Shown: positions 1,088 to 63,180, counted from the stretch's first letter. The stretch is 64,000 nucleotides of DNA from Ophelia neglecta (GCA_965285935.1 OZ260666.1:48670001-48734000), one strand, 5' to 3'. Made by a program: numbers and translations. The notes: generated from the sequence alone by a model not told the origin.

Positions 1088-3890
1088 ATGACGGAGGAGG
1101 AAGTTCTCGAACTCTGCTGTACAGCAACTTATGAACAAAATGGATTTGCTGTTGATATAGGCAAGTACAAGGTTACTGGTTGTGTGTACGTTTATGTGTC
1201 TTCTTCGCGTCTATTAAATTTAATTTTTTTTATCAAATAAAATGAACAATCTATTTAACAATATTAGAAATAAGAAATTAAAAAATAGCCTTGGAAAGAA
1301 AATCGCATCAAAATAAAACAATCCACTATCAATATTTGCTATGTAGGCGGTACGTTGATCAAGTTGGCTTTGTGTCGGAGTGACTCGGAGACTGGCGTCG
1401 CCACCGTAGCCTTCCGATCTTTCCCGCTGTCCCAGCTTGAAGAAGCTATGGCATGTATTGAGGAAAAATATAGCGATCTATTGGAGACAGACGCAAACAT
1501 AATTTGCTGTGGTGTAGGTATTGGAGATCGTAAACAGAAGCTTTATGACACGCTGAAAATGCGGTAAGCAGCGACTGATTCTATTTTTGTCCATTCGGCT
1601 TATTTGGTTGACAGTGAATTTGTTTTAAAAGCAGCCAACGTCACACCAAAACGAAGCGGAAATTGCATAAAACTCAAACATAAAACATATTGGCTACCCC
1701 CCCCCCCTCCCCCACCACCACCACCACCACCCACCCACACACGCAAGAAATCAAAATATTCTTTTATAATTAATCTGTAATCGGAGATCCAGAGATCATA
1801 TAAGTATAGCCTATAAATACCTACACACGCCCTTTATCAATGGGACAGTACGTTTGTACTAACTTGACATGAATCTTGATTTACTTATTCCAATACAGTG
1901 TGCAGACAGCCTCGGAGATGGACTGTTTCGTGGAGGCATTTACCTGTCTGTACGAGAACCTGCCACGGGAGAAGATGCTGCACGCTAAATCAAAAAAGGG
2001 TCGAGCATACGTTGAGCGACAAAGTGCAGAGTGGAGAGAGATGATCACTAAAAGTCAGCGTTTTATTGAAAAGGAAGAGGATTCAAGCAAGTGGAAATCT
2101 AGCGACACGAAACTTTCCGAAGAAGTGCCTTCTCACGCCCAAGGAACATACCCCGTGTTGCTATCAATGATGGGATCTGGGATGGGCATCCTTCGGGTTT
2201 AATAATTATCTAACTTTTAACGAGAAATGGGTGTCTAAAAATTGAACTTTTGAACAACTGAAAATTGAACAATTATACCACGCGTATGTATATAAACCCA
2301 TGTGTTTTTAGCTTATAGGCCTTTTGAGTAATCATGAATTAATAATCGATTTTTAGATCGACAAAGGGAATAAGTATGAGTTATTAGATGCAGGGACGCG
2401 ATGTGGGAGATGTTTCTTAGGGCTCGCTGGTTTGCTTACTGGAGTGAAGGTACATGGTAAAGTTTTTTTTTCTTTAGAGAATGTTTAAATATTGCGTTTA
2501 TGTAATTATATAGATGGGCAAAATTGGGGTGTTGGCCTCCACAAAGAAGCATTGTTAAAGTGGAAAAGTGTTATTTTTAGCTAGAAGCCATTCATTGAGA
2601 TTATTACTTACATATATTTATTCATTGGGTAGAACAAATCGCACGTAAAAATGAAAGTTATTGTGCTACTATTGCTAATTGCGATGTGGTTTATAAACGG
2701 AGTTTCATGGAATATATTCTTCCGCGTCTACTGAAAGCATTCTTATAAATGGTAAACATGGGTTCAGGGGGTGGCGTTCGGATGTACCATATGTTTGGGG
2801 TGAAATTCGAAATCACTCGATAAATGTAATTTTGCTCTGACCCCAGAACTTTGACGATTTGATACTGTTAGCCGAGAACGGTGATTCAGATAATATCCAC
2901 TCTTTGGGAAAGCATGTCAAACCTGAAAACAACGATGATGCCTATTCTGTTATACCTGACCACATGCCTCTATACTGTTATGGACAAACAGTTGGAAAAA
3001 ATTTGGGTTAGTCTCCGTTTTATTCGGCCTTGAGAGTAAATCTTCATGTCACGTCCACACTTATCTTCTTGCAAAGTATTAAGTATGATAAAAAAAAGTT
3101 TTCATAATTTGGCGCTATTTCTTCTCTAATGTACAGGAATGCTTATATGCTTCGAGTTTACCTCTGTGGTTTAATTTTATTTTCAATCCTAACACGTTCC
3201 AGGTGACTTTTCAAAAGAAGACCTGGCCGCTGCGGTTTTGAGTACAATATCACAGGTGACTTTATGCGAACAGCTCATGCATTCAACATTTAGTATCGGC
3301 CCCTATATAAAATATCATACGAATGTCACGTGACACAAGTGTCTCTTACAATCAAATGATTAAATACATATTATGCTTCTTTGATACTTTGGACAAGAAT
3401 CAAGCTAATGTTGACCATTCTTAAAAACCTACAGGATATTGCGCAAGCCGTATTATTGAGAACGCTGCTCCATAAAATAGAATCTGTCTTTTTCTGTGGC
3501 TCTTTTTGTGGACTCTGTCATGTTGTACTCGATGAGGTATCGAAGTATTTTATGGAGAAAGCCGCTCTTCACCCCCAGGTAAGATAATGCATGATCTACT
3601 CACTCTTGTATTTCCTTCCCTGTTAGTAATCTCCTATTTTTACCTGTTTTAAGACAAAACCTAAGTGTAACCCCATAAAAAAGTCAATTTCTAACTATTA
3701 TTGCGAGCTGCCATCTTTTCACCATTGTTGTTAATTCTTAAGCATGCCTCTTATCGTATAAATACAAAGTTTTCTCTCTTCTACATTTAAACAGATAGAA
3801 TTTGGTTTCATGAAGTACGGGGGATATCTTGGTGCGCTCGGGGCACTTTTACGGACTCTCAAAATAAAGTATGACAATTCCAACCTATGA
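1088..3890 (+). CDS. Divergent type II pantothenate kinase-fold protein (PANK4 N-terminal-domain-like, kinase domain only), paralog 1; 8 coding exons, 377 aa
   Basis: Hand-spliced exons 1088-1160, 1347-1563, 1899-2196, 2357-2449, 2847-3006, 3203-3255, 3435-3578 and 3795-3890 give an open 1134-nt frame. All acceptors are AG. Donors are GT except intron 1 (AG|GCAAGT). Fumble/PanK-II motifs occur in order: FAVDIGGTLIKLA, SEMDCF, YPVLLSMMGSG, FLGLAGLLTG-K-NFDDL-LAENGD, DFSKEDLA, ISQDIAQ, VFFCGSF, GYLGALGA. Exon lengths match paralog 2 exactly. Confidence 0.92.
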
Positions 3891-6800
3891 ACAGATTACA
3901 TGATTATTGTCAGATCCCATAGACTATGGGGTCTGACCATCAATACACCATGTTAACCTATCTAGAAAATCATATTGCTGCTATATTGTCACTTTGTTGT
4001 GGTTTTTTACGTTATTTTAATTTGTAACTGATGAGTGAGTTACTGCAATGATTTAGATTTGGAATGATTATTGACTTTATTATCATGATATAGAATCATA
4101 GCTTGTATCATTACAAGACAGGAATTGACCCTGCCTTTGCGATCCTAAATTCCGACTTACAAAACAAAGTGTATTAAAATGTTTCATAAATTCATTATCT
4201 TTATGTTTTCTCTTATTTTATATATGCAAATGAACCAAAATAATCCAAAGAAATGGAGAAATGGGGGAACGGCTAGTAATTTGGTTAAAAACAATCTATC
4301 ATAGGGCATTAGGTTTACTCATCGCCTTTATACACATGTAGCCTATAATAGCCCATTTTTATCAAGGGTGGGAAATTTGTCTATGATAGACGACACATAT
4401 GGATTTCCCTCTCTTTGTTTACTATTGTACCGAATGAATGTTGAATAGCTGTGAAAGCAAAGCTGGCTGGCCTGGCACTAGCCAGGCCAACTGGGAGTGT
4501 ATGTTTAACTATCCTTGACCGGCCTATATAATAGGCGTGTATACCTATGTTCACTGAATTTGACCGAATCATAGACAAATCCCTGATAAAAATCACAATT
4601 TTAATATTAAAATTGTTCAATTATTTCATGGGCCAGATATTGAAATCCTCCCCCTCTCTTGGGATTCTGGAAGACAGTCGTTTTTGGAAAAGCAAGGACC
4701 TGACGGATCCGAATCTGGATGGTTACATTAAAATATCCGTGGGGTGTAGTTATCAGACTGTGGTAACCACTACAGTCTTCTTAAACATATGTATTAAACG
4801 CAAGAAAAAGTGCCTTATCCAAAAAATAAAATAATTTTTAATGACTATTAATATGCCTCAGGTGAGAGGAATTCAGTTAGACAGATGCAATCATCATTTA
4901 TATACCGGTTACCCTGCATGGTAACCTGCTATACAATGTGAAATATGGGGATGATTTCTTTATTTGCCTGGCACATACATGTAGTTAGCCATAGAGTCAA
5001 CCAGAATTCTTTTTTTATGTATATGGCCTATAGATTTCAACTATTTACCATGACACATAAGTTTGGCCACCGGGACAAAAGTTACCATGTCAACCAGGTT
5101 AAACATATGAAAAATTATAATAACCTGTTTACTAATAGGACAATTATCCAAAATGAATTTCACAAGTAAAATAATACAAATATATCAGGAAGTGTGGTGC
5201 TTTGTAGGTTTCTAAAGTATTCTCGCATATGCTTTTAAATGTAATGTCTTAAATGAATCAATCGCTTGAACATTCCATAGTAACCAACACTTATATATTA
5301 AAAAAAATAGGGAAATCGGGATATATCCATAACAAACCTAAAATAATAAAATGATATTGTTACTTAAGGATAAGGATGGAAAATCTGAAAAGAAGGAGTC
5401 TGCTATTGAACGTATCGTTCATCTCAAAGTTTTTCAAATAAACTATTCATAAATACTCCCCCCCCCCCCCCCCCCCCCCCCGACGCCAAATGTTGAGACA
5501 CCGGAGAGTTGATAAGCGTTGTCTTATCAGTCCGGTATAAAAAGTACAAGTTGTTTCACTGCTATAGGTCACAAGTCAACGCTTCTCGCTGGGGCGGGGT
5601 TTCGCCCCCCTCCCGCCTCCCTAGCCCCCCCCCCCCAATCGACTACACCACTAGTAGGCCTACTTCTGTAGCACAAAGTTTGATGTTGCAAGGGCCTCGC
5701 TACAATATTAATTATACAAATGGTAGCATTATAATATTGTATTGCATCACTATGTACATGAATGCTGAATGTTATAAATGATCTATTGGCAGACATTGTA
5801 GCCCATGTAATTATGTCGAAACTTACACTTTAATATAGGATGATTTTATACGTACTGGGTCACTGATCAGACAAGGTTTACTTAATAGTGAGCCGTGTAT
5901 GCATGGAGTAGATCCAACTTAATATCAGATTGTTAAACTCGCATGTCCCACTCATCTAGTAGTAAGCACAGGGACACGTCACGATTTCTTTCACCTTTGC
6001 ACATGGGCTTGTGTCAAAGCCTAAGTATGTATATATACTAACTACGTTATATAGTATAGGTATGTTGACACAAGCCCCTGTGCACCTTTGTGCTCTAGCT
6101 TGCTGCATTCCCTTTTCCCCTGACTGACTCGGAATGAGGGGGGGGGGGGCAATGTTAAGAAGGGGAGATGTATTTTAGTTTCTGAATACCCGAGACACCT
6201 AATATGCAAATAGTACCTAGCACATATTAAGCCATACATTAAAATACTGTAGCAGCGCCGTTATAAAGAAAGAAATTAAATTAAATATTCTCTAACCTCA
6301 CACCCTTCCTCGTATGTTTGCTGAAAGTGGCCCCAACGCATGTAAATCACGGCCAAAAAAACCATCCTAGTAGGCTATGAGAAGCACGTCCCTTATAGGC
6401 CCCACCAATGTAATGGAGCTTAACTGCCGAGATAACGAATACAAGCATTAATTTAGTCTGGTCGGATATTAGAGGTGAAGGGAGGAGAGTATAATCAGCA
6501 CATATACCGAAGTTTATGATACATTCCCCTGTGTGATTTAGCTAGAGATCATTTGAACAGCACCATATATGGTAAGTATGGTCGTACTGTTTAGTAGGCC
6601 TACACGATATAAGACCATTGGGGTGAGCAATGCACTTAACATACATTTGATGTCGGATCCACCGGGTATTGACCATTAAGGGAGTGTTTATTGTTAATAA
6701 CCAGTGTTGCGGTGCGGGGGGGGGGGGGGCGTGGCGGTAAATAATAGGCTTGATATCTTTGCGAAACTATATCGCCCGGTACCCCACTTTAGTATATACA

Positions 6801-7383
6801 GGATTACTATCCTCTATCTTTGGTAATAATAATTTATTACATTAATGAGTAGTACCCAGGAAGATGTGGTTAAAAGCACTGCTGTTTATATTTATCATGC
6901 TTTTAAAGAATTGAGGTCATATCTACAAATATAAACAATCTTTCGATATCTACTTTATGCAGCGGTAAAAAAGTTTCTTTTTTTTATTCATCGATGTCTT
7001 CGCTGTGTTCGGCTTGCGCATCAACATATATGTAAATAAATCTAGATTGTTTTGATTACATTGGGCCTACGGCCTTGTAGTACTATGTAAATAAACCAAC
7101 TTGTAATAAAAAAAATCCACCGTCGCCAAATGCTATAGTACACGGGGGAATTAGGAAATATTTCCTGACCATGTTTCTTATGTAAAGTCAAGTCGCAATA
7201 ATTTGGCAAAACTTAGTAGGCCCATAAGTAGATTAGCACAAAACGATAGTATATCAGGACAGAGGTAACATTCCCCTTTGCTTTGGACATGATGTACATT
7301 ATAGTATTTTTTTCTTGCTATTGCGCTTCAGTATCATATCTGCTTCACCTTCATCGTAAATAATCTTATTGCAGACTTCTACT

Positions 7384-10300
7384 ATGGCTGACGAAGAATT
7401 TATGGAGCTCCCTTGTTCAGTAACATGGGGGCAGAATGGAATGTCATTCGATATTGGTATCTACATCTGGAATATACAGTTATTTTATGTTACTTACATG
7501 TAATACGTTACAAGGTAGTTAAAACGTCAGATAATTTTAGTAAAGTTTAAAGGTCTTTGTAAAAAAAAAAAGATAAAAAAAAAGACCCTATTTACAAGTG
7601 TTCTGTAGGCGGTTCCTTGATCAAACTGGCCTTTTGTCGGAGTAACAAAGACACTGGTCTAGCCAGGATCAACTTCCGGTCTTATCCGCTGTCCCAGTTC
7701 GACGAAGCGATGGATTATGTACTAGAAAACCACAGCGACTTACTAGAGTTAGATGCGACTGTATGTTGCAGTGGTTTGGGTATCGGAGACAGATCACAGG
7801 CCATGTATGACAAACTGAAAATTAGGTAAGCCACTAGCGATTTCAGTTAAATGACAAATTAGGTCATTTTAGAAAAAAGCTATATAAATTGGAATCTACT
7901 AGCTATAATTATATGAACTCGGCTCTTTTGCTAACGCTAAACGACATGTTTGAAAAAAACAGAAAACGTGTCAAACACTTTGTTTGGGTAACTATACTTG
8001 CCCTATTTTGTGGCATTACGACGTCAAAGTTGTGGACAAACCTGGACAGGTGTAAAGGATATTTTCTTTATTATCATCTTAACCTAGCTATACATGATAT
8101 TTCGTATGATCAAGGAACCAGATAAGTCTAATCCCACAATGGCTATGTTTTATAAAAAAGTCATCTCCAATAAAATGACTGTTAGAGCTAAGCGTATAGA
8201 AAATAACGCTAAAAGCAATGCATGATAAATTAGTGAACTTAAAACAGGACGCGAAAGGAATCTTCATTAAAATTCAGGGCGAAAATTCCATAACGACACT
8301 GACGAGTAGTGTGATAGATAAAGAGGATGTGCGTGATCATTATCAAGAGTAAACTACTTGATTCTGCCCTAACAACACAGCTTATAGGGCCTTTTGAAAT
8401 ATTGTTGAGACGTCACACCATTATTCATGCAGTAGGTTCGGAAGCACGAATCTACTGCAGACAGTAGATTCGTACACTACCACCAGTAAATTCGTGTGTA
8501 TTGCAATGCACGAATCTACTGGATGATAATTTAAGTGTGCCGGCGACCCATTCCACCGTCTAGTTTGTGTTTTTTGAGAGACACCAAATCCCAGCCATTG
8601 AGAAAGCGCATTTCTCGATTGTTGATGAAAAAATTTGCTGACTAGACGAAATGATACCCCGTAGTGTATAAGCTGGAAAAGGTTCTCCGTTTTGCTATTT
8701 CACTTCAAAGATAAACGTCGTGAGGCGAAGCACAGTTTATCTATTCTTATCTAGTGGCTCCCATATTACTGGGCCCCTTTGTAGCTCGACATTATATCCA
8801 TCCGAGAGTTACGCCACTTTCTCAAATCAGTGAACAAATAGCCTTCCTAAAAGTGTGGCAGCACAAGCCCGACTTAACTTGTCCATCGTAGACTTGTCGA
8901 CAATGAAAAACGCAGGAAAATATAGGTCTGCTATAATACACCCGCTATACTTAATGTTTAAATTTCAGATATATGCCCATTTCAATATAGGTCAGTAGTT
9001 AAAAAGAAAAAAGAAATCAACGCGACTTACCCTTTTCCAGCTTTCTGCTCGTCCCTAAGTGTTGAACTGCCCAAACTCTTACACTAATAATTGACTGATT
9101 TGCTCTTTTTACATTTTTTTCTGTTCGTCCTCGGATATGTCAGAACAAATTGGATGATATCTGGCTTTGTTTGACGACATTATTTAGATATCCAATTGCA
9201 GATTGTGGGAAATATGTCTAACTCAGAACATGTCGTGTCTCCTCCTATCAAAAGATCATTCCCCCTATCATCGGTAACTTGAGTGAAATAGCTTTGCACT
9301 ATGAATAGATCATTCTAGAACCCATATTAGACAAAACGTTATCAACCTTCCTCGGCTACAACTCATGTTCCGAATGAAATGCTATGCCATGCACTTGGCC
9401 CGGCGTCGTTACGCAACAACCTCTTGTTTTGCTGCCTTCCGAATATACAGGTCACAATATGAATTCGCGGCCGTCACCCTGAAGATGTTATGCAATATAT
9501 TAAGTCAGGCAATTAACATGGAGCGATATATTTGTGTAGATCGAATCACCTCGGCGCTATCGCGCCTCGGTGTTTCGACTGCACAAATTTACCGCTCCTC
9601 GCCAATTCTCCTATTCTAATAATGCCAAGACAAGAGGGCGGCGGAAAGGAGAATTATTAGTGCAAAACTAATAATACATTCTTTCATTCCTGCTTAATGG
9701 CAGTTATAATTATAATTACTGTAGAGGGAAGACGGTTTCGGAACTGGATTGTTTCGTGGAAGCGTTTTCCTGTCTGTACGAGACTTTACCACGTGAGAAG
9801 ATGATCCATGCCGAGTCGGAGGTGGGCCGAGCTTACCTCCTTCGACAGCAGGCAGAATGGTCGCAAATGATACATGCCCAGCAGTCCTTTGTTGAAAAAG
9901 GAGAGCAGTCAACGAATTGGAGCCCGAAGGAGCACGAAACTCCAAAAACACAACATTCCCACCCACAAGGAACCTATCCGGTATTACTGGTCATTCTTGG
10001 CTCCGGGTTTGGCGCTTTTCGGGTAAGAGGCACTTCATAGCTTTTTGCTAACCATGAACATTTTATTGAAGTATTGAGTAACATGTAATTTTTTTTTATA
10101 TCCATAATATTATGAAAACACAAAACCACTAACCACTTAATCATCTTCCTTTAGATTGATGCAGCAAATAAATATCAGTTTGTAGATCCAGGCACCAGAT
10201 CTGGCAAGTTCTTTTTAGGACTGGGTAGCCTACTAACTGGAGCTCAGGTAAAGAATTTGTATATACCTGTTAATAGCATTATAATTAATTATTTTATGTT

Positions 10301-12501
10301 TTTTCCTAAGTCGAGACATACCATGTAAGTTTTTTTTTCAAGGAAAATAAAATGTGAATTTATGAGTATGCAAGGGTAATGTCACATTTTCTTTCATCGC
10401 CATTTTCTTGCCTCTATCATGTTTAATTCATATAGTTCAAAAATCATTTTTAAGCTGAACTTTCTTTATTTTTTGATCTTAGGTGGCCCCTGCGATAAAG
10501 CGAATAGTTTAAAATCTTTAAATAAGTGGGGGTTTCCCTGTGTGAAAATAACTGATTTATATATAATTTAAATGTTTATATTAATATTGTGAACAAGTCA
10601 CATTTTCCAATAGTTCTGATTCTAATTTATTAATTTGTAAAGCCCTAACTGTTTACAGAATTTCGACGATTTAGTGCAAATGGCAGAGAAAGGTGATTCA
10701 GAAAGGGTTCAGGTTTTGGGCAAGCATGTGAAAACTGGCAACAAAGACGATGTTTATAGTGTCATTCCTAACCATATGCCTCTCTACTGTTTCGGTCAGG
10801 CAGTAGGTAAAAATATCGGTATGCGCCATTTACATGAACATAAATCAGTATTGAATTACACTGTTTTTCCCTCCCATCGTTAAATCAACCAAAACTGTTT
10901 TCTCCTACCAATGTTAAACCAACCAAAGGTGCCTCTGATTTATAAGCCAAGTATACTTATTTCGTGATCATTTTCAAATCATCAGGCCGAATCGAGACTC
11001 TAAAGTAAAAAGTATTCTCACATACTTATGGGCTATAGTTATCCAGCTTTGAACGTCCGAGCCTAGGATAAGTTTTTACTTATTGGTCCAAGTTACCAAG
11101 GCTTAAAGTTTTCTTAAAATCGAATTTCTGTACAACAGAAAAATCACTGACGATTTATCGTGCGTGATGCTTAAATATTCCGCCGGTGTGTTTACAAATA
11201 TACTCATTGTTTACAGCTTGACACTGATACATTTTCCGTGCGCAAAGTTGGAAAAAATTATTGTTTATTCGGTTCTTATACACCGTTTCCTTCAATTTCG
11301 ATCTTATGACTACGGTTGGGAACGAGAGCCGATTTAACAGTTATTATATAGGTCCCTGTGAAGCTAAAAAATATGTACTTTATTAAAGCACTATATAAGC
11401 CTGGTCCATGGAACTATCGATAGTTGATCCGTCATCCACTCGTCAGGATTCATGAAGAATTAGTAAAATATAGTTTCACCTGAAAGGAGATGAAAACCGA
11501 AGCCTTATTATGAATGTTCGAAAGATATGCATCTGGCTTAAAATTAGCTCTATATTTGGTTCAAGAAATGAAATATATAAGGTTAAACTGCCAGAGAAAC
11601 CGGAAATTGCCTAAGAACTTTCGTGCGGGTTCACCTGAGCTCTGTCGTCCAAGGCTGGATAACCTGACTTATGAATGTTAAACCGTTAAAAAACATCCTT
11701 AAGTATTTAATATCAATTTTTAAACGTTAATGTCAACAACAACAAAAACAGCGCAATGGAATATGGGCATATTTGGTTCCGATTAGTAAAAAGACGATAA
11801 AGCTTAACGATTGCAATTTAAAGTATTATAACTGTCTTAAAAGTATATATTCGAATTTGACCTATTGCAGATGATTTTTCCAAAGAAGACTTAGCGTCGG
11901 CTTTACTGAGTACAATATCACAGGAGATGTTTAGGCCTACACTGTGCAAATGACCTCAACTTAGATTTAAGTATCATTGGAGTCGAATAATGAGACCATT
12001 TCGCCTCTATATTTACAGGATATAGCTCAGACCGTGTTCCTGAATATGAAGCTTCATAAGACCGAGTCCGTGTTTTTCTGTGGCTCTTTTTGTGGGTTGA
12101 GCCAAGTAGTACGAGACGAAGTTTCCAAGCATTTTATGAGCCGAGCTTCTTCCCAAAAAACGGTCAGATAGTAGTGAATACACTTATCCAATTGCGTCTA
12201 TGATTGTAGATCTACATCTATTAGGGTTGTTTGTATATCTCTCTTTGTAAACCCATACAGTCATGTGTATTTGTACTTCTTTAACTGTTTCTTATTCCTA
12301 GCATGTGATTGGTTTTTTTTTGCGAAATTAAAGCTAGTTTGATTGTATTCTTTTATACTAGAAATCGCGCATTAATATTTTCGTCTTTTTTACATTTGAA
12401 TACAGACTGATCATGGGTTCATGAAGTTCGGTGGACATCTTGGTGCACTGGGCGCACTATTGCGAACACTCAAAGCAAAACAGGGGAGCAAAATACCCTA
12501 A
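7384..12501 (+). CDS. Divergent type II pantothenate kinase-fold protein (PANK4 N-terminal-domain-like, kinase domain only), paralog 2; 8 coding exons, 377 aa; intron 6 has a GA donor
   Basis: Exons 7384-7456, 7609-7825, 9725-10022, 10155-10247, 10659-10818, 11871-11923, 12019-12162 and 12406-12501 (73/217/298/93/160/53/144/96 nt, same as paralog 1). Motifs: SFDIGGSLIKLA, SELDCF, YPVLLVILGSG, FFLGLGSLLTG, MAEKGD, DFSKEDLA, VFFCGSF, GHLGALGA. No stops or indels in the exons. The exon 6 donor reads CAG|GAGATG, so the gene uses a non-canonical splice site, is a broken allele, or carries a base error. Confidence 0.85.
8428..8522. repeat. Cluster of five direct and inverted copies of a CAGTAGATTCGT-like motif in intron 2 of paralog 2
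   Basis: Copies at about 8430(+), 8445(-), 8462(+), 8484(+) and 8509(-) form alternative hairpins. They lie inside an intron expanded to 1899 bp (335 bp in paralog 1). Confidence 0.75.
11038..11663. mobile_element. Probable MITE of about 626 bp in intron 5 of paralog 2
   Basis: Imperfect 30-bp inverted termini: GTTATCCAGCTTTGAACGTCCGAGCCTAGG versus CCTGAGCTCTGTCGTCCAAGGCTGGATAAC (24/30). It explains most of the intron size difference (1052 versus 196 bp in paralog 1). No clean TSD. Confidence 0.65.
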
Positions 12502-12530: not shown

Positions 12531-12536
12531 AATAAA
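12531..12536 (+). terminator. Candidate polyadenylation signal of paralog 2
   Basis: First AATAAA, 30 nt after the stop codon. Others occur near 12755 and 12929. Which one is used cannot be determined from sequence. Confidence 0.3.
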
Positions 12537-46600: not shown

Positions 46601-49068
46601 ACTGGTAGATTCGCTATTTAGGTCAATAAGTCGTATTCACTACACATCTGGATTGTGTGTTGATGAACCTTTACCTATTGGTTATAAAATCCGAATTCAG
46701 TAACGCATTTCAAAAAAATTCCCCCCCCCCCCCCGGCAAATTTCGAGTTTATGCAAGTTATTTTGATTCGCCTTTCCTGGAATCAATGAAAGGGTCGACC
46801 GCTTATTACCAAACAGCCATGTTGTAATGGCTGGCCTTGTTTGGATACGGGATGGTACGCTACAATGCAGTTATGTTTTAAGAACACATATCAATATCCT
46901 GACTTCGCTCTCGGGATTGCGGAACAAATCATGTTTCGATCCGTAAAAGCAGCAGCCTAGCGTTTTGATAGGTTCAAACTAGTGAATGTTAAAAAGGCGG
47001 CCCTTGTCTCTTAATTAATGGCCGACAGTATCAATGCATCTTCATTATGCCCCATCATTATTTCATTCGAAGCTTTCAAGAAGATAGCTTTCATATATAT
47101 ATTACACTCCTATCTGAGTAGATCTTCCATAGAACCTGACAATTTTATTGGTGATTAATTTGGTAGCTCGAATTTAATATTTCATAATAAGCCCCTAACA
47201 TGCTCTTCTCCCCAGGTAAAATATGATTTTGATACACTCTAAATAATATACATGATAGCCAGTAGCTGGGACAAATATACACACTGCCGATTTTATTGAC
47301 TACCATAATTATGTGGAAACGACTCAACATATGACATTATGACACAATTCCCATGCTGTTTGGCTTCTACCAGGCTTTTAATATACGAGTTATGGCTAGC
47401 TGTATTCCAATGCGACACCTATGAATTGAACACAATGAATAATAGATATATGCTCATTCTATTAAACAAAATGAATCCGAAAATATTATTAACAATGAAA
47501 CACATTACCAAGCATCAATAATTACAGATGTGTCAACTGTGTAACCTTTTTTTCGTTCATAAGGAAACTGATATTCTGCGACTTGTGTGGTCTGCCGAGG
47601 TTCTAATATACCAACCATATCGGAAAGCCCATTTCTGCCGTGCTGCCTAACGCCATAATTTCTCATTGGTAAATTCAATTCGTTTCAGAATCTGTCATAC
47701 TTGTACATGTGAGGTTTTTACTCGTGGCTTGTACCAGGTCCGTTTATTTGATTTAACTGTGACGTTTGCGTAGTATAAATGTAAACTTTATAATCCCAGG
47801 CTCGCCAAGATGAACTTTGCGCTGATCAACAACCAGTTAACCATCAGCAATTATTCTACAGTTGGTTCTAGAACGAAAAACCAATATCCGCTTGAAAAGA
47901 GTTTTTTGTTGAAGTTATAATTGTAACCGGGATGAAATTGTGGAATGCAATGACACAAGCACGATTAGTTTTCATCTAAAATAGGAAAAGAGCAGTGTGT
48001 GTGTGTGGGGGGGGGGGGAGTCTATGCCGTGTTCAAAACAGCAATGAAAATACTGTATATGTTTACATTAATTGAGTATGACTGACTTCACTTGGCTACC
48101 GTCGTGGTTGTTGTTGTTTGTAATGCCAGGGCTTCGTTGTTGATTGTTTGTGAGAGTGTAACGGAAACTGAACCCTAAAGACCGCCTGTCCATTGGTTAA
48201 TTAGAAAAGAGTTGTTTCTTCAGGTATGTTATAAATTGTATTACACATAAAAGTTCAAGGCATGCGTTTGCATAGAGCATTAACATAGAAGGACAATGGC
48301 TGCTTACATAGACTGTGAACAAAAAGGCCTAGAGGTCCTGGGTTCTGATATTCGATCTTAATAGTGATTTTTTGTGTCTTCAGAGCACTATAATTAAAAA
48401 CCTTTTAGGAACTCACTCCAACTTCCTCTGATAGCTCTCCCCAGCTTGTTTTACTTCATTGAAGTAGGTTCTGTTGTGCATCACTTAAATTATATATTGG
48501 TGACAGATTTTAGACGGTTCTAAATGTCTTAAGGTGAACGTTTCCCAAGAATAATAGTCGCAATGGGCCAAGGTTTTATCATACCCTCGTACTTGAGTCG
48601 GTATCATTTGGTTTACCGCCATCCGCGTGGCAGGTTATGGCTCTCTGATTATGAAGGTTTTTGGCCCGAGATTTTAAATGCGTGCGATAGAAGACACGTT
48701 TCATATTATATGGTTTTTGCGCTGATTAACCTCTGCCTTCACGTACCCATATTATACACCTTTAAGTAACATACTCGTTAGAGACCTCAGGATTGGTGTT
48801 TGTTAGCCTGCAGTTGATGTTCATGGATGCATACGTGACCAATGAAAGGCTAAATCCTTATCAATTTGTTTACACTAATATCAAAAGACATGCGTAGATG
48901 TAAAGAAAATTTAAGCTACTCTGGGATCGATCATAATGATACATACTCGTACGATCCCACAGTAATTTTTTATGGACAGGTGGACTGTTTAAAGTTCTAC
49001 CGTCTCTGAGGACGATGAAATGATTCATCTACAGCTGATTCATTAAATGGTATCATCATGGTCGCAGT

Positions 49069-50296
49069 CTTAAGTGGAATCCCCACATTAACAAAGTGTC
49101 TAGTAAGGTTTGGTATTTTAAATAGACTCAAACACTCTCTTCCTGAACATATTTTAGTGATGCTGTACAATACCTTAATTCTCCCGCATTTTACCTACTG
49201 TATTACTGCCTGGGGTTTCGATTGTCATAGATTGATGGGATTACAGAAAAGGGCGGTGAGGATCGCCACATTAAGCAATTTCCTTTCTCATTCTGAACCA
49301 ATTCTTAAAAGACTTGGTCTACTGAAGATACAAGATCTTTACAAGTTAAATGTACTTAAATTCTTCTATAAATTTTCACATTTGTTACTACCTGATTATT
49401 TCACGTCGTTTCCTATTTTCCAACACGTAAATTTACATTCATATAATACAAGAAACCGAGATCAATACTATATCCCATTTAGTAAACATTTTTTCACTAA
49501 GAAATCTATCAGGCACAGTGTAGTGGCTGTAGTTAATGATAGTCCTCCCTCTGTATTAGATAAAGTTTCTACGCATAGCCTGCAAGGCTTTACTAATTAC
49601 GTTAAGAAAAGCTATATTACTTCGTACAGTGAAAGCTGTAACATTCCTAACTGTTATGTGTGTGCAAGACAATAATTCTGCTTTATATGCATGTATGTCC
49701 ATATTTATGCTCTCTGTATAATTTTTTGTGTACGGGACAATGATTTTGCTTTATATGCAGGTATGTCCATATTTATGCTCTCTATATAATTTGAGGCCGA
49801 AACTGTGCATTTGAATTTTATGAGCGTACAGGACAATAATTTTGCTTTATATGCATGTGTCCAAAATAATTGTTATGCTCTCTATATAATTTGTGTGCAG
49901 GTCAATAATTTTGCTTTATATGCATGTATGTCCATAATCATGCTCTCTGTATAATTTGAGGCCGAAACTGTGTATTTAAATTTTATGATAGTCTTATTTT
50001 CACAGATGAATTAACCGTTAATCTGTACACGCATCATAATTATGTATGTGGTAACGCATTCAATTCTCTTTTACTTTTTTTCAATGTATTTATATTATAC
50101 ATCTTTATTACATACGGCTTTGTTTACTTTGGCTTAACCATGGTTATAATGATTTATTAGTCTGGGTGGCCCTCACGCTAGCGACTTTTACAAGTCTTAG
50201 TGAGGGTCTCCCTGGTCAAGTGTTATATTGTAAATTCATACAACCTTTATCAATTATTGTACATATGTTAGACCAAATAAAATTATATCTGAATCT
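49069..50296 (+). mobile_element. 5'-truncated non-LTR retrotransposon (L2/Crack/CR1 group): ORF2 C-terminus plus 3'UTR and tail
   Basis: Post-RT LINE motifs: LKWNPHINKVSSKV (frameshift near 49111), then GILNRLKH, LYNTLILPHFTYC..AWG, LQKRAVRI, HSEPIL..LGLL, YNTRN and a terminal CxxxxCYVC (stop at 49675). The 3'UTR has internal repeats, a stem-loop at 50168-50208, AATAAA and an (ATCTGA)-type tail. GCAGT flanks both ends (49064-49068 and 50297-50301) and may be a TSD. Confidence 0.88.
49667..49990 (+). repeat. Higher-order tandem repeat in the LINE 3'UTR (2 units of about 165 bp, each made of two related subunits)
   Basis: TGCTTTATATGCA...ATGCTCTCT.TATAATTT recurs at about 49679, 49747, 49843 and 49912. 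GAGGCCGAAACTGTG follows only subunits 2 and 4. Confidence 0.85.
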
Positions 50297-61870: not shown

Positions 61871-61914
61871 ACCACATGTTCTTAGGCATTCCCAGGATAC
61901 AGCCAGACTCCATC

Positions 61915-63180
61915 ATGGCGTCGCCATCACTTTTCTTCACTATCGGCTGTCTAGTCTTGTTCATTAACGCCATTGTGACAATCGCCTGTCCGGTTATTGT
62001 AAAGACAAACCATACCAATCTCTGCGAGTGCACCACTATGTTAGATATCTACTGTAGCGGCCTTCAGAAGGTGCCCACATTTTACAGGAACGATATTGTA
62101 TACAACGGATTATACATGTCTAGACAAAATATAAGGAATCTCCCGAATGTGGTATTCTTTAATCTTATGGTGAAGAAAATTGAGCTAAACTTTAACCCAA
62201 TCGGTGACAATATCGAGGTTAATGCTCTGGCTGGTTTGGAAAGGACTTTGGAACAATTATACATGGGTGGGTGTCGAATAAGGACTTTGCCCACAGGCAT
62301 GTTAATAGGACTGGAAGCAATGAAGATTCTCCATTTGTGGGGTAATCAAATTCGTGATCTCCCCCCTAACTGGTTTAAAGGAGCGGCCAACTTAGTGGTA
62401 CTACTTTTGTGGGGAAATCAAATCCGCACTGTTGACATCGATTCATTCACTGGGCTCACCAGTCTGCGGACATTAGATTTGGAGAGAAATCAGATAACTA
62501 AACTGGACCAAAAAATGTTCCGGGATCTGACAAATCTTCAATCACTACACCTCGGGGAGAATAATCTTATAACTGTAAATGGGGAGACATTTACCTACAT
62601 GAGCAACTTAAAAGTACTAAATTTGGATGCTAACGGTTTGGAATTTATTTGGCCAAAGGCATTTGATGGTCTTAGGAATCTAATGATTTTAAGCTTACAG
62701 GATAATGCAATCGATCTAATATCGGACCAAGTTCTGGGTCATCTACGAAACCTGTCAGTTCTAAGGCTACAGAACAACCATATTAAGCATTTATGGGCGA
62801 AAAACTTCGACGGACTTCGGGCCTTGCAGAGCATAGACCTATCTCATAACATCTTAACTGAGCTGCCCGAAGGTGTCTTTCGGCAGGCACCTAAGCTTTT
62901 GGAGCTCTATCTAGACAATAACAATCTTACATCTCTGACCAAATGTATACTTCACAAACGTTCACGCCAAAACCTACGTACACTGTCACTAGTGGGTAAT
63001 CCCATTGTGTGTGACTGCGAAATGTCGTGGACCGTGAATCTACAGGCCCGGGGAGTATCAGTCTGGGGAACGTGTCATCATACCCCGAAGGAAATCCTAC
63101 TCAAACTGACGCCAATTACTTACAAATCAAACTACTACCTGCTCAGCGAACCATGTAATGACAAAGATTGTCGCATGTAA
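61915..63180 (+). CDS. Secreted leucine-rich-repeat protein (signal peptide, LRRNT, about 12-13 LRRs of 24 aa, LRRCT); single coding exon, no transmembrane segment
   Basis: The ORF is 434 codons from ATG 61876. The in-frame ATG at 61915 (catcATGG, good Kozak context) precedes a hydrophobic signal-like stretch (MASPSLFFTIGCLVLFINAIVTIA). This is followed by a Cys cap (CP...CEC...IYC), repeated LxxLxLxxNxIxxL...F units and NPIVCDC...W...C...C at the end. No specific orthologue recognised. Confidence 0.93.
   Translation: MASPSLFFTIGCLVLFINAIVTIACPVIVKTNHTNLCECTTMLDIYCSGLQKVPTFYRNDIVYNGLYMSRQNIRNLPNVVFFNLMVKKIELNFNPIGDNIEVNALAGLERTLEQLYMGGCRIRTLPTGMLIGLEAMKILHLWGNQIRDLPPNWFKGAANLVVLLLWGNQIRTVDIDSFTGLTSLRTLDLERNQITKLDQKMFRDLTNLQSLHLGENNLITVNGETFTYMSNLKVLNLDANGLEFIWPKAFDGLRNLMILSLQDNAIDLISDQVLGHLRNLSVLRLQNNHIKHLWAKNFDGLRALQSIDLSHNILTELPEGVFRQAPKLLELYLDNNNLTSLTKCILHKRSRQNLRTLSLVGNPIVCDCEMSWTVNLQARGVSVWGTCHHTPKEILLKLTPITYKSNYYLLSEPCNDKDCRM

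Follow-up and report, generated by a model that had tools for sequence, protein, structure and literature searches.

Tandem genes A and B of Ophelia neglecta are members of a kinase-only, PANK4-like family

Genes A (positions 1088-3890) and B (positions 7384-12501), which lie on one strand of a 64,000-nucleotide stretch of Ophelia neglecta DNA (hereafter, the window), belong to a kinase-only, PANK4-like family with about 20 or more genes in this genome. The interpretation that we favor, to which we assign a probability of roughly 60%, is that A and B arose by an old tandem duplication within a stand-alone PanK-fold family, that this family derives from the kinase half of a gene of the PANK4 type, and that the products of A and B are not pantothenate kinases. 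To our knowledge, the PanK fold occurs in animals only in PANK1-3 of the CoA pathway and as the N-terminal half of PANK4, a half that has no catalytic activity in mammals.

The gene models, which were built from the sequence, have eight exons and 377 codons each, and the exon lengths (73, 217, 298, 93, 160, 53, 144, and 96 nt) are identical in A and B. In A, exon 1 (1088-1160) runs from the ATG to DIG/G, where it is interrupted by a phase-1 intron; exon 2 (1347-1563) runs from the continuation of the P-loop (GTLIKL) to a CGVGIG loop; exon 3 (1899-2196) encodes SEMDCF, which contains the Glu138 equivalent, a family-specific insert of ~40 aa, and a GSG loop; exon 4 (2357-2449) encodes an R-x-G-R loop and FLGL and, at 93 nt, has the length of PANK4 exon 5; exon 5 (2847-3006) encodes NFDDL..LAENGD; exon 6 (3203-3255) encodes DFSKEDLA..ISQ; exon 7 (3435-3578) encodes DIAQ..VFFCGSF; and exon 8 (3795-3890) encodes GGYLGALGA, followed by 14 aa and a TGA stop, with a poly(A)-like signal at 4173. 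The exons of B, likewise on the plus strand, are exon 1 (7384-7456), exon 2 (7609-7825), exon 3 (9725-10022), exon 4 (10155-10247), exon 5 (10659-10818), exon 6 (11871-11923), exon 7 (12019-12162), and exon 8 (12406-12501), the last encoding GGHLGALGA, followed by 14 aa and a TAA stop, with a poly(A)-like signal at 12531. In both genes, in-frame stops are present 5' of the ATG, and no stop or frameshift is present within the exons of either. The two genes are 61.5% identical in amino-acid sequence and 67% identical in nucleotide sequence. These measurements confirm the original prediction of twin 377-aa genes with matching exon lengths, about 60% identity, lesion-free exons, and an end about 14 aa past the G(Y/H)LGALGA motif.

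Differences between A and B number 102, 73, and 199 at codon positions 1, 2, and 3, and dN/dS is 0.15-0.23 at a dS of 1.2-1.9. The codon-position pattern and the dN/dS values fit constrained coding sequences rather than chance open reading frames, and the purifying selection bears out the earlier suggestion that the pair has been selectively kept. With L031, a relative from another species, as outgroup, no asymmetry in rate is detected between B and A (29 vs. 22 unique changes; p = 0.33).

All splice sites of A are GT or GC, and, as far as the sequence can tell, gene A looks intact. A GC donor (gcaagt) is present at intron 1 of A, a feature that the original prediction did not mention. Another feature not mentioned there is found at intron 6 of B, which has a GA donor (CAG/gagatg; GA at 11924-11925) in place of GT, such that exon 6 was missed by an exon finder limited to GT and GC donors. 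The GA is variant-free in contigs of three DNA runs (X1-X3) from one sample, inspection of the sequence reveals no other in-frame donor or acceptor for this intron (no in-frame GT), and read-through of the intron leads to a stop after 10 codons. This donor may reflect an uncommon kind of non-canonical splicing, or it may be a disabling mutation of very recent date; the reading frame itself is intact. It is conceivable, but in our judgment unlikely, that B, or A and B together, is a non-functional relic: that is, an unexpressed or recently disabled pseudogene. The GA donor with its read-through stop favors a relic, as does an in-frame TGA in exon 4 of at least one family member (C2:22344098); however, the retention of 377 intact codons in both genes despite a dS above 1, the low dN/dS, the absence of acceleration in B, the integrity in B of all family-invariant motifs, and the regular splice sites of A argue against one.

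Full-length homology to bona fide members places A and B in the type II PanK fold. In local blastp comparisons (dbsize 2e8), the spliced models match the PANK4 kinase domain of the same genome with E values of 3e-21 and 2e-24 over residues 20-369, and match the canonical PANK of the same genome more weakly, with E values of 7e-16 and 3e-13. Exon-by-exon comparison with the Fumble profile (PF03630), which scores single exons only against a gathering score of 28.5 bits, stays below that score, with at best 17.9 bits, for exon 3 of A (E 0.0018), followed by 14.1 bits for exon 3 of B, 12.3 bits for exon 7 of B, and 11.5 bits for exon 8 of A. A comparison of exon 3 of A with PDB sequences yields nothing relevant, and its matches in the ESM Atlas are only "hypothetical" clusters with scores ≤0.85. 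Neither A nor B has the C-terminal DUF89/ARMT1-like phosphatase domain of PANK4. A tblastn search of the 64-kb window with the DUF89 exons of the genome's own PANK4 and with ARMT1 finds no DUF89 sequence (best E 0.013, on the wrong strand), and PF01937 has no match on the contig of A and B, the only matches in the genome being on a different contig. The results support the earlier description of PanK-domain genes without a phosphatase half and without DUF89 exons downstream; a complete PANK4 and a canonical PANK, the presence of which had been proposed as a check, are both found elsewhere in the genome.

The pair had been taken for an isolated, duplicated offshoot, which the genome-wide results contradict. 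Exon profiles match 34 sites for exon 5 and 41 sites for exon 4, with collinear exon-4/exon-5 pairs at 27 loci, newly found loci being counted by such collinear pairs only. Ten paralogues that follow the exon scheme of A and B were modelled by use of tblastn and the exon finder, and two kinase-only genes ("bridge" genes) combine the complete PANK4 exon scheme with the motifs of the family. Relatives are also present in three other sources (P0001-P0006, L031, and L032). A profile of exon 3 searched against 1.8e9 representatives returns only three short genomic-ORF matches and no annotated full-length protein, a result that understates the range of the family because exon 3 is its most variable exon. 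In the literature, of which our coverage was incomplete, no account of a kinase-only family resembling PANK4 turned up, and we read the family as a putative, hitherto undescribed subfamily of PANK4 type in which the substrate pocket is remodelled.

In human PanK3, Glu138 serves as the general base, and Ser195, Arg207, Asp137, and Tyr254 bind or stabilise pantothenate (PMC8366970). Equivalents of these residues were identified by alignment through the canonical PANK of the same genome, in which the spacing matches HsPanK3 numbering. Both genes keep the P-loop motif DIGG[ST]L.K (DIGGTLIKL in A, DIGGSLIKL in B) and the Glu138 equivalent (in SEMDCF in A and SELDCF in B). Among paralogues that are only ~25-35% identical, the Glu138 equivalent is invariant (eight of eight modelled members), as is the DIGG Asp (nine of nine); the GSG loop is likewise preserved in the family, as is G.[YH]LGALGA at the C terminus, and A and B keep the Tyr258 equivalent. 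The residue set of an active pantothenate kinase (EC 2.7.1.33; Ser195/Arg207/Asp137/Tyr254), on the other hand, is missing: the equivalents of Ser195, Asp137, and Tyr254 are Gly, Ser, and Lys in A and B, the equivalent of Arg207 is Leu (A) or Phe (B), and the DIYGG motif is gone. The L-G-G-G loop is replaced by a conserved R-x-G-R/K in the family, and two glycine-rich loops are altered, from TGGG to G-V/L-G-I and from GGGT to C/S-G-R/K-x. The canonical PANK and PANK4 of the same genome carry the full residue set, the latter retaining the Ser195, Arg207, and Tyr254 equivalents that A and B have lost; thus the proposal that the pair is a mirror image of human PANK4 does not stand in its original form. 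Since the pantothenate-binding residues are lost, A and B probably have a role other than making coenzyme A.

A different reading of the same residues, which is possible but which we do not expect to prevail, is that A and B are non-catalytic pseudokinases: that is, PanK-fold scaffolds or ligand sensors that would dimerise with each other or with PANK or PANK4 and would regulate, for example, CoA metabolism. The loss of the Ser195, Arg207, and Tyr254 equivalents is consistent with this reading, as are the changes in the two glycine-rich loops, which could abolish ATP binding and make the proteins pseudoenzymes. Precedents are the kinase-like domain of human PANK4, a pseudokinase with substitutions E138V and R207W (PMC8861153), and apicomplexan PanK paralogues with incomplete residue sets, which act only in heteromers (PMC8366970). 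However, the invariance of the Glu138 equivalent and of the DIGG Asp would be unusual for a mere scaffold, the GSG and C-terminal glycine motifs are retained, and the same residues are missing from both A and B, such that an A/B heterodimer would be unable to restore the pantothenate site.

The affinity to PANK4 is clearest in gene structure. On an intron map for which the references are the PANK4 and canonical PANK of the same genome only, introns 1-4 of A and B coincide with PANK4 introns in alignment column and phase (four of seven), introns 5 and 7 have the PANK4 phase with an offset of 1-2 residues, intron 6 is private, and the five introns of canonical PANK have no counterpart in A or B. 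Exon 4 equals its PANK4 counterpart in length. The exon-intron structure is that of a PANK4-type kinase-like domain, in support of the PANK4-like intron positions noted in the original prediction. The broader claim, that A and B are closer to PANK4 than to PANK1-3, is favored by the intron map and by the blastp scores, but the preference in sequence is weak: identity is 29% to PANK4 vs. 26-28% to canonical PANK, and 24 signature sites are PANK4-like vs. 17 PANK-like, a difference that is not significant (p = 0.35). Motif resemblances to PANK4 that had been cited from recall are real when set against the PANK4 of the same genome, but are not decisive. In an unrooted own-genome tree, A and B are sisters (99/96) with L031, from another species, as their outgroup, and the bridge genes and the family are set apart from both PANK and PANK4 (99/96). 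Because the tree is unrooted and includes only the PANK and PANK4 of this genome, derivation from PANK4 rests on intron positions; gene structure argues for a PANK4 relationship, as read from the sequence, but the shared introns could be ancestral and lost by canonical PANK.

In that event, which we consider improbable, the family of A and B would represent an independent, ancient PanK lineage that was never joined to DUF89. The near-equal identity to PANK4 and PANK, the non-significant signature preference, and the placement of family and bridge genes opposite both in the unrooted tree are compatible with such a lineage. It would, however, mean that 6-7 introns disappeared from canonical PANK and that 5 new ones were inserted there, and it sits poorly with the full PANK4 exon scheme of the bridge genes, which includes the extra split of exon 2; with the exon-5 profile, which finds PANK4 (E 4e-4) and misses canonical PANK; and with the position of the coding end, a few codons from the exon boundary ahead of the DUF89 part in PANK4. 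It is very improbable that A and B encode ordinary pantothenate kinases, redundant within the CoA pathway, since, although fold, DIGG loop, and catalytic Glu are present, the Arg207, Ser195, and Tyr254 equivalents are replaced, DIYGG is lost, and the genome already has PANK and PANK4 with a full residue set.

According to the interpretation that we favor, the family of A and B was most likely founded by a partial duplication that took the kinase half of a gene of the PANK4 type, and a cut at the domain boundary would have left out the DUF89 phosphatase. The kinase-only family would then have radiated, with A and B arising by tandem duplication. The nucleotide-binding P-loop and the general-base Glu would have been retained while the pantothenate-positioning residues were replaced, and the predicted products most likely act as dimers that transfer phosphate from ATP, or at a minimum bind nucleotides, and have an acceptor pocket remodelled for another small molecule. 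A stronger form of this proposal, which we put forward as speculative, is that the genes, together with their relatives from other marine sources, constitute a hitherto undescribed, expanded animal family of ATP-dependent small-molecule kinases that originated from the PANK4 kinase half and that may have acquired, through the rebuilt pocket, new substrates, as in phosphorylation of metabolites or xenobiotics. Candidate elements of the rebuilt pocket would be the R-x-G-R/K loop, the FFCGSF motif, and the hypervariable exon-3 insert. A selectively maintained family with a rebuilt substrate site would mean that the kinase-like module of PANK4 lends itself to reuse beyond CoA metabolism, and it would supply natural sequence variants for probing the role of that module in PANK4. 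More generally, a pair that seems isolated in one window can belong to a genome-wide expansion.

With PANK1-3/fumble (PF03630), A and B share the ASKHA PanK fold, DIGG[ST]L.K, the catalytic Glu, and the C-terminal G.[FL]GA.GA, with ~26-28% identity to the canonical PANK of the same genome across ~300 aa; they differ in having none of its five introns and in not conserving pantothenate-binding residues. With apicomplexan PanK1 and PanK2, they share divergence between paralogues and incomplete active-site sets, for which the apicomplexan proteins provide a precedent of dimers of unlike protomers; those, however, complement each other, whereas in A and B the missing residues are the same. With the human PANK4 pseudokinase domain, they share loss, in a PANK4-type domain, of the equivalent of the substrate-positioning Arg207, but the A/B family strictly keeps the Glu138 equivalent, and its domain stands alone. 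From PANK4 in general, they differ in the absence of DUF89, in the ~40-aa insert in exon 3, in having R-x-G-R/K in place of L/M-G-G-G, in forming a multigene family in contrast to single-copy PANK4, and in one intron lost and one gained. With PANK4 they share the fold, four of seven introns identical in position and phase and two nearly so, the 93-nt exon 4, the local motifs ..FD[DE]L..LAENGD, N[IL]P.E, and ..LH.., and a blastp score above that for canonical PANK.

Three-frame translation and inspection of splice sites define two tandem, same-strand, kinase-only genes, A and B, each having eight plus-strand exons: gene A at 1088-1160, 1347-1563, 1899-2196, 2357-2449, 2847-3006, 3203-3255, 3435-3578, and 3795-3890, and gene B at 7384-7456, 7609-7825, 9725-10022, 10155-10247, 10659-10818, 11871-11923, 12019-12162, and 12406-12501. 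The original prediction of two 377-residue genes with matching exon lengths, about 60% identity, and no lesions is confirmed: exon lengths are equal (73, 217, 298, 93, 160, 53, 144, and 96 nt), identity is 61.5% for protein and 67% for nucleotides, and the exons contain neither stops nor frameshifts. Both ATGs are preceded by in-frame stops, both stop codons fall 14 residues past G(Y/H)LGALGA, and poly(A)-like signals follow. A custom exon finder using gene A exon peptides recovered gene B, missing only exon 6, and A and B are the only copies in the window. The window also contains an intronless 434-residue leucine-rich-repeat ORF (61876-63180, plus strand; LRR_8, E = 4.7e-99), with best relatives among metagenome or Logan ORFs (44-48% identity; named animal proteins, ≤33%), and a 205-residue ORF (49058-49675, plus strand) with zero Pfam matches.

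Comparison of A with B gives dN/dS of 0.15 (NG86), 0.15 (YN00), and 0.23 (LWL85), with dS of 1.2-1.9; differences at codon positions 1, 2, and 3 number 102, 73, and 199; and, when L031, a homologue from another species, serves as outgroup, private changes number 29 in A and 22 in B (p = 0.33). The dS, the dN/dS, and the evenness of private changes indicate that the duplication is old and that constraint has acted on A and B alike for most of the time since, bearing out the proposed selective retention. Two splice-site features had been overlooked: a GC donor at A intron 1, and a B intron 6 that starts with GA, not GT (CAG|gagatg). The GA is variant-free in contigs of three DNA runs from one sample, no in-frame substitute donor or acceptor was found for this intron, and read-through reaches a stop after 10 codons. 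Disabling of B, if any, would be recent. B intron 2 is 1.9 kb, vs. 335 nt in A, because of a high-copy repeat that fills it (~8360-9600; it shows numerous divergent contig pieces and joints, and its summed contig depth reaches ~2300 vs. ~20 in flanks).

Single-exon Pfam searches gave sub-threshold matches to Fumble, the type II PanK family (A exon 3, E = 0.0018, 17.9 bits, under the 28.5 cut-off; B exon 3, B exon 7, and A exon 8, weaker still). When the spliced A and B were compared by local blastp (dbsize 2e8), E-values were 3e-21 and 2e-24 over residues 20-369 against the kinase domain of this genome's own PANK4 (29% identity) and 7e-16 and 3e-13 against its own canonical PANK (26-28% identity); the identities are low, and the E-values make homology to the PanK fold secure. 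In the 762 Mb assembly (G000), the window lies at 48.67 Mb on contig C9. The canonical PANK (66.54 Mb), the full PANK4 with kinase-like domain and exons for the DUF89 phosphatase half (40.47-40.48 Mb), both expected elsewhere in the genome, and an ARMT1 gene are on contig C1.

Residue matches do not choose between PANK4 and PANK: at sites where A and B agree, 24 match PANK4 only and 17 PANK only (p = 0.35). Exon-intron structure separates the two. A/B introns 1-4 are identical in alignment column and phase to PANK4 introns: DIG|G (phase 1), the codon preceding V-x4-E-M (phase 2), after IL[RK] (phase 0), and after LT..K, before [NG]FD[DE]L (phase 0). Introns 5 (phase 1) and 7 (phase 0) lie 1-2 residues from equal-phase PANK4 introns, and exon 4 and the matching PANK4 exon are both 93 nt. 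None of five canonical PANK introns coincides with an A/B intron. Intron 6 (ISQ|DIAQ) sets A and B apart: no intron breaks this stretch in PANK4 or in at least four modelled paralogues (L018, second L019 gene, L028, L029). The predicted PANK4-like intron positions are thus present, and the claimed closeness to PANK4 over PANK1-3 holds for the intron map and blastp E-values but not for sequence signatures. Both coding sequences end a few codons past the PANK4 exon boundary preceding the DUF89 part, which fits a partial duplication truncated there. In line with the first reading, DUF89 exons are absent: in tblastn of the window, ARMT1 and seven DUF89 exons of the own PANK4 found no similarity (best E = 0.013, wrong strand), and PF01937 has no matches on C9. 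The proposed derivation from PANK4 rests on introns shared inside one genome; the trees, whose PANK and PANK4 sequences come from that genome, are unrooted.

The Fumble HMM matches many further loci in the genome, most of them nearer A and B than PANK4 or PANK by tblastn. The exon finder gave collinear models that follow the A/B exon scheme for four genes at C2:22.34-22.38 Mb and also at C1:118.76, C9:35.48, C9:46.3, C7:15.7, C7:71.1, and C1:49.5 Mb. Two kinase-only "bridge" genes, at C2:1.56 Mb and C1:9.05 Mb and sharing 87% identity, match the PANK4 exon scheme in full, down to the additional split of exon 2, and already carry the family motifs TGVGC and FCGSY and loss of the Arg207 equivalent (human PanK3 numbering). 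Exon 4 and exon 5 profiles detect 41 and 34 exons genome-wide, forming collinear pairs at 27 loci (25 without the bridge genes); the exon 5 profile reaches PANK4 (E = 4e-4), not canonical PANK. The proposed kinase-only offshoot is duplicated and DUF89-free, but A and B are not a lone pair, and this family context lifts them above an ordinary paralogue pair.

Three of the 27 loci lie on C17 and may represent haplotype copies of the cluster at C7:11.3-11.66 Mb: the profile scores of the three at G000:C17:548928-675629 equal those of three at G000:C7:11302092-11516181, which probably reflects either a haplotype copy left unplaced or a segmental duplication of recent date. An in-frame TGA in exon 4 of one C2-cluster member (G000:C2:22344098-22344190) indicates at least one pseudogenised member. 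Nine exon-4-like matches at G000:C7:104456238-104948085, with equal scores (27.5-31.9 bits), ~50-60 kb spacing, and no exon 5 partner, may form an array produced by segmental duplication, made up either of gene fragments or of a subfamily that has diverged further. At the C2 bridge gene, a 548-residue open frame (L023:6281-7924; G000:C2:1564280-1565923) comprises ~20 tandem copies of a 24-residue unit, formed by the 3' end of exon 4 (..PYIPVNLGSALTIIEV..) and the beginning of the gene's intron, so that the tandem amplification spans the exon-intron junction. Introns and flanks of the other bridge gene (L021 and L022; G000:C1:9047000-9069999) hold kilobases of tandem repeats open in several frames, with units such as ..GGLTSLGTGGGVPRG...

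In the unrooted tree, bridge genes plus family split from PANK and PANK4 (support 99/96), the divergent family splits from the remainder (98/97), and A groups with B as its sister (99/96), L031 being the outgroup to the pair (93/98). An exon 3 profile searched against 1.8e9 representatives found three clusters only, all genomic ORF fragments: Logan contig L031 (exons 1-4, ~50% identity), a scaffold from a TARA Oceans metagenome, and four contigs belonging to a single ENA assembly. The family is therefore real in other organisms, probably marine ones. Annotated proteomes lack it at exon 3 profile sensitivity, and neither PANK4-like genes confined to the kinase part nor an animal PanK-fold expansion turned up in literature searches.

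In human PanK3, Glu138, Ser195, and Arg207 bind pantothenate, and Asp137, Tyr254', and Tyr258' stabilise the site (PMC8366970). The own PANK and own PANK4 keep all of these residues, with exactly the human spacing in PANK. In A, B, and the modelled family, Asp137 is changed to Ser, Ser195 to Gly, Tyr254 to Lys, Arg207 to Leu or Phe (hydrophobic family-wide), and TGGG to G-V/L-G-I; L-G-G-G becomes R-x-G-R/K family-wide, and FFCGSF is a new motif. With these residues lost, the proteins are predicted to be unable to position pantothenate in the manner of a PanK. The main rival reading, that the family consists of non-catalytic pseudoenzymes, we consider less probable than the one favoured below. 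Among A, B, and the modelled family, the Asp of DIGG is kept in 9/9 and the Glu138 equivalent in 8/8, and the GSG loop, Tyr258 equivalent, and G.[YH]LGALGA are also kept. Because the P-loop and general base are strictly kept in paralogues only ~25-35% identical, we prefer, with a probability of roughly 45%, the reading that the family would still have an activity that depends on nucleotides and is directed at another substrate.

In human PANK4, E138V and R207W account for the lack of activity (PMC8861153). Unlike human PANK4, the own PANK4 (L016/L015; G000:C1:40470000-40480000, minus strand) retains the equivalents of Glu138, Ser195, Arg207, Tyr254, and Tyr258, and its kinase-like domain may be an active kinase.
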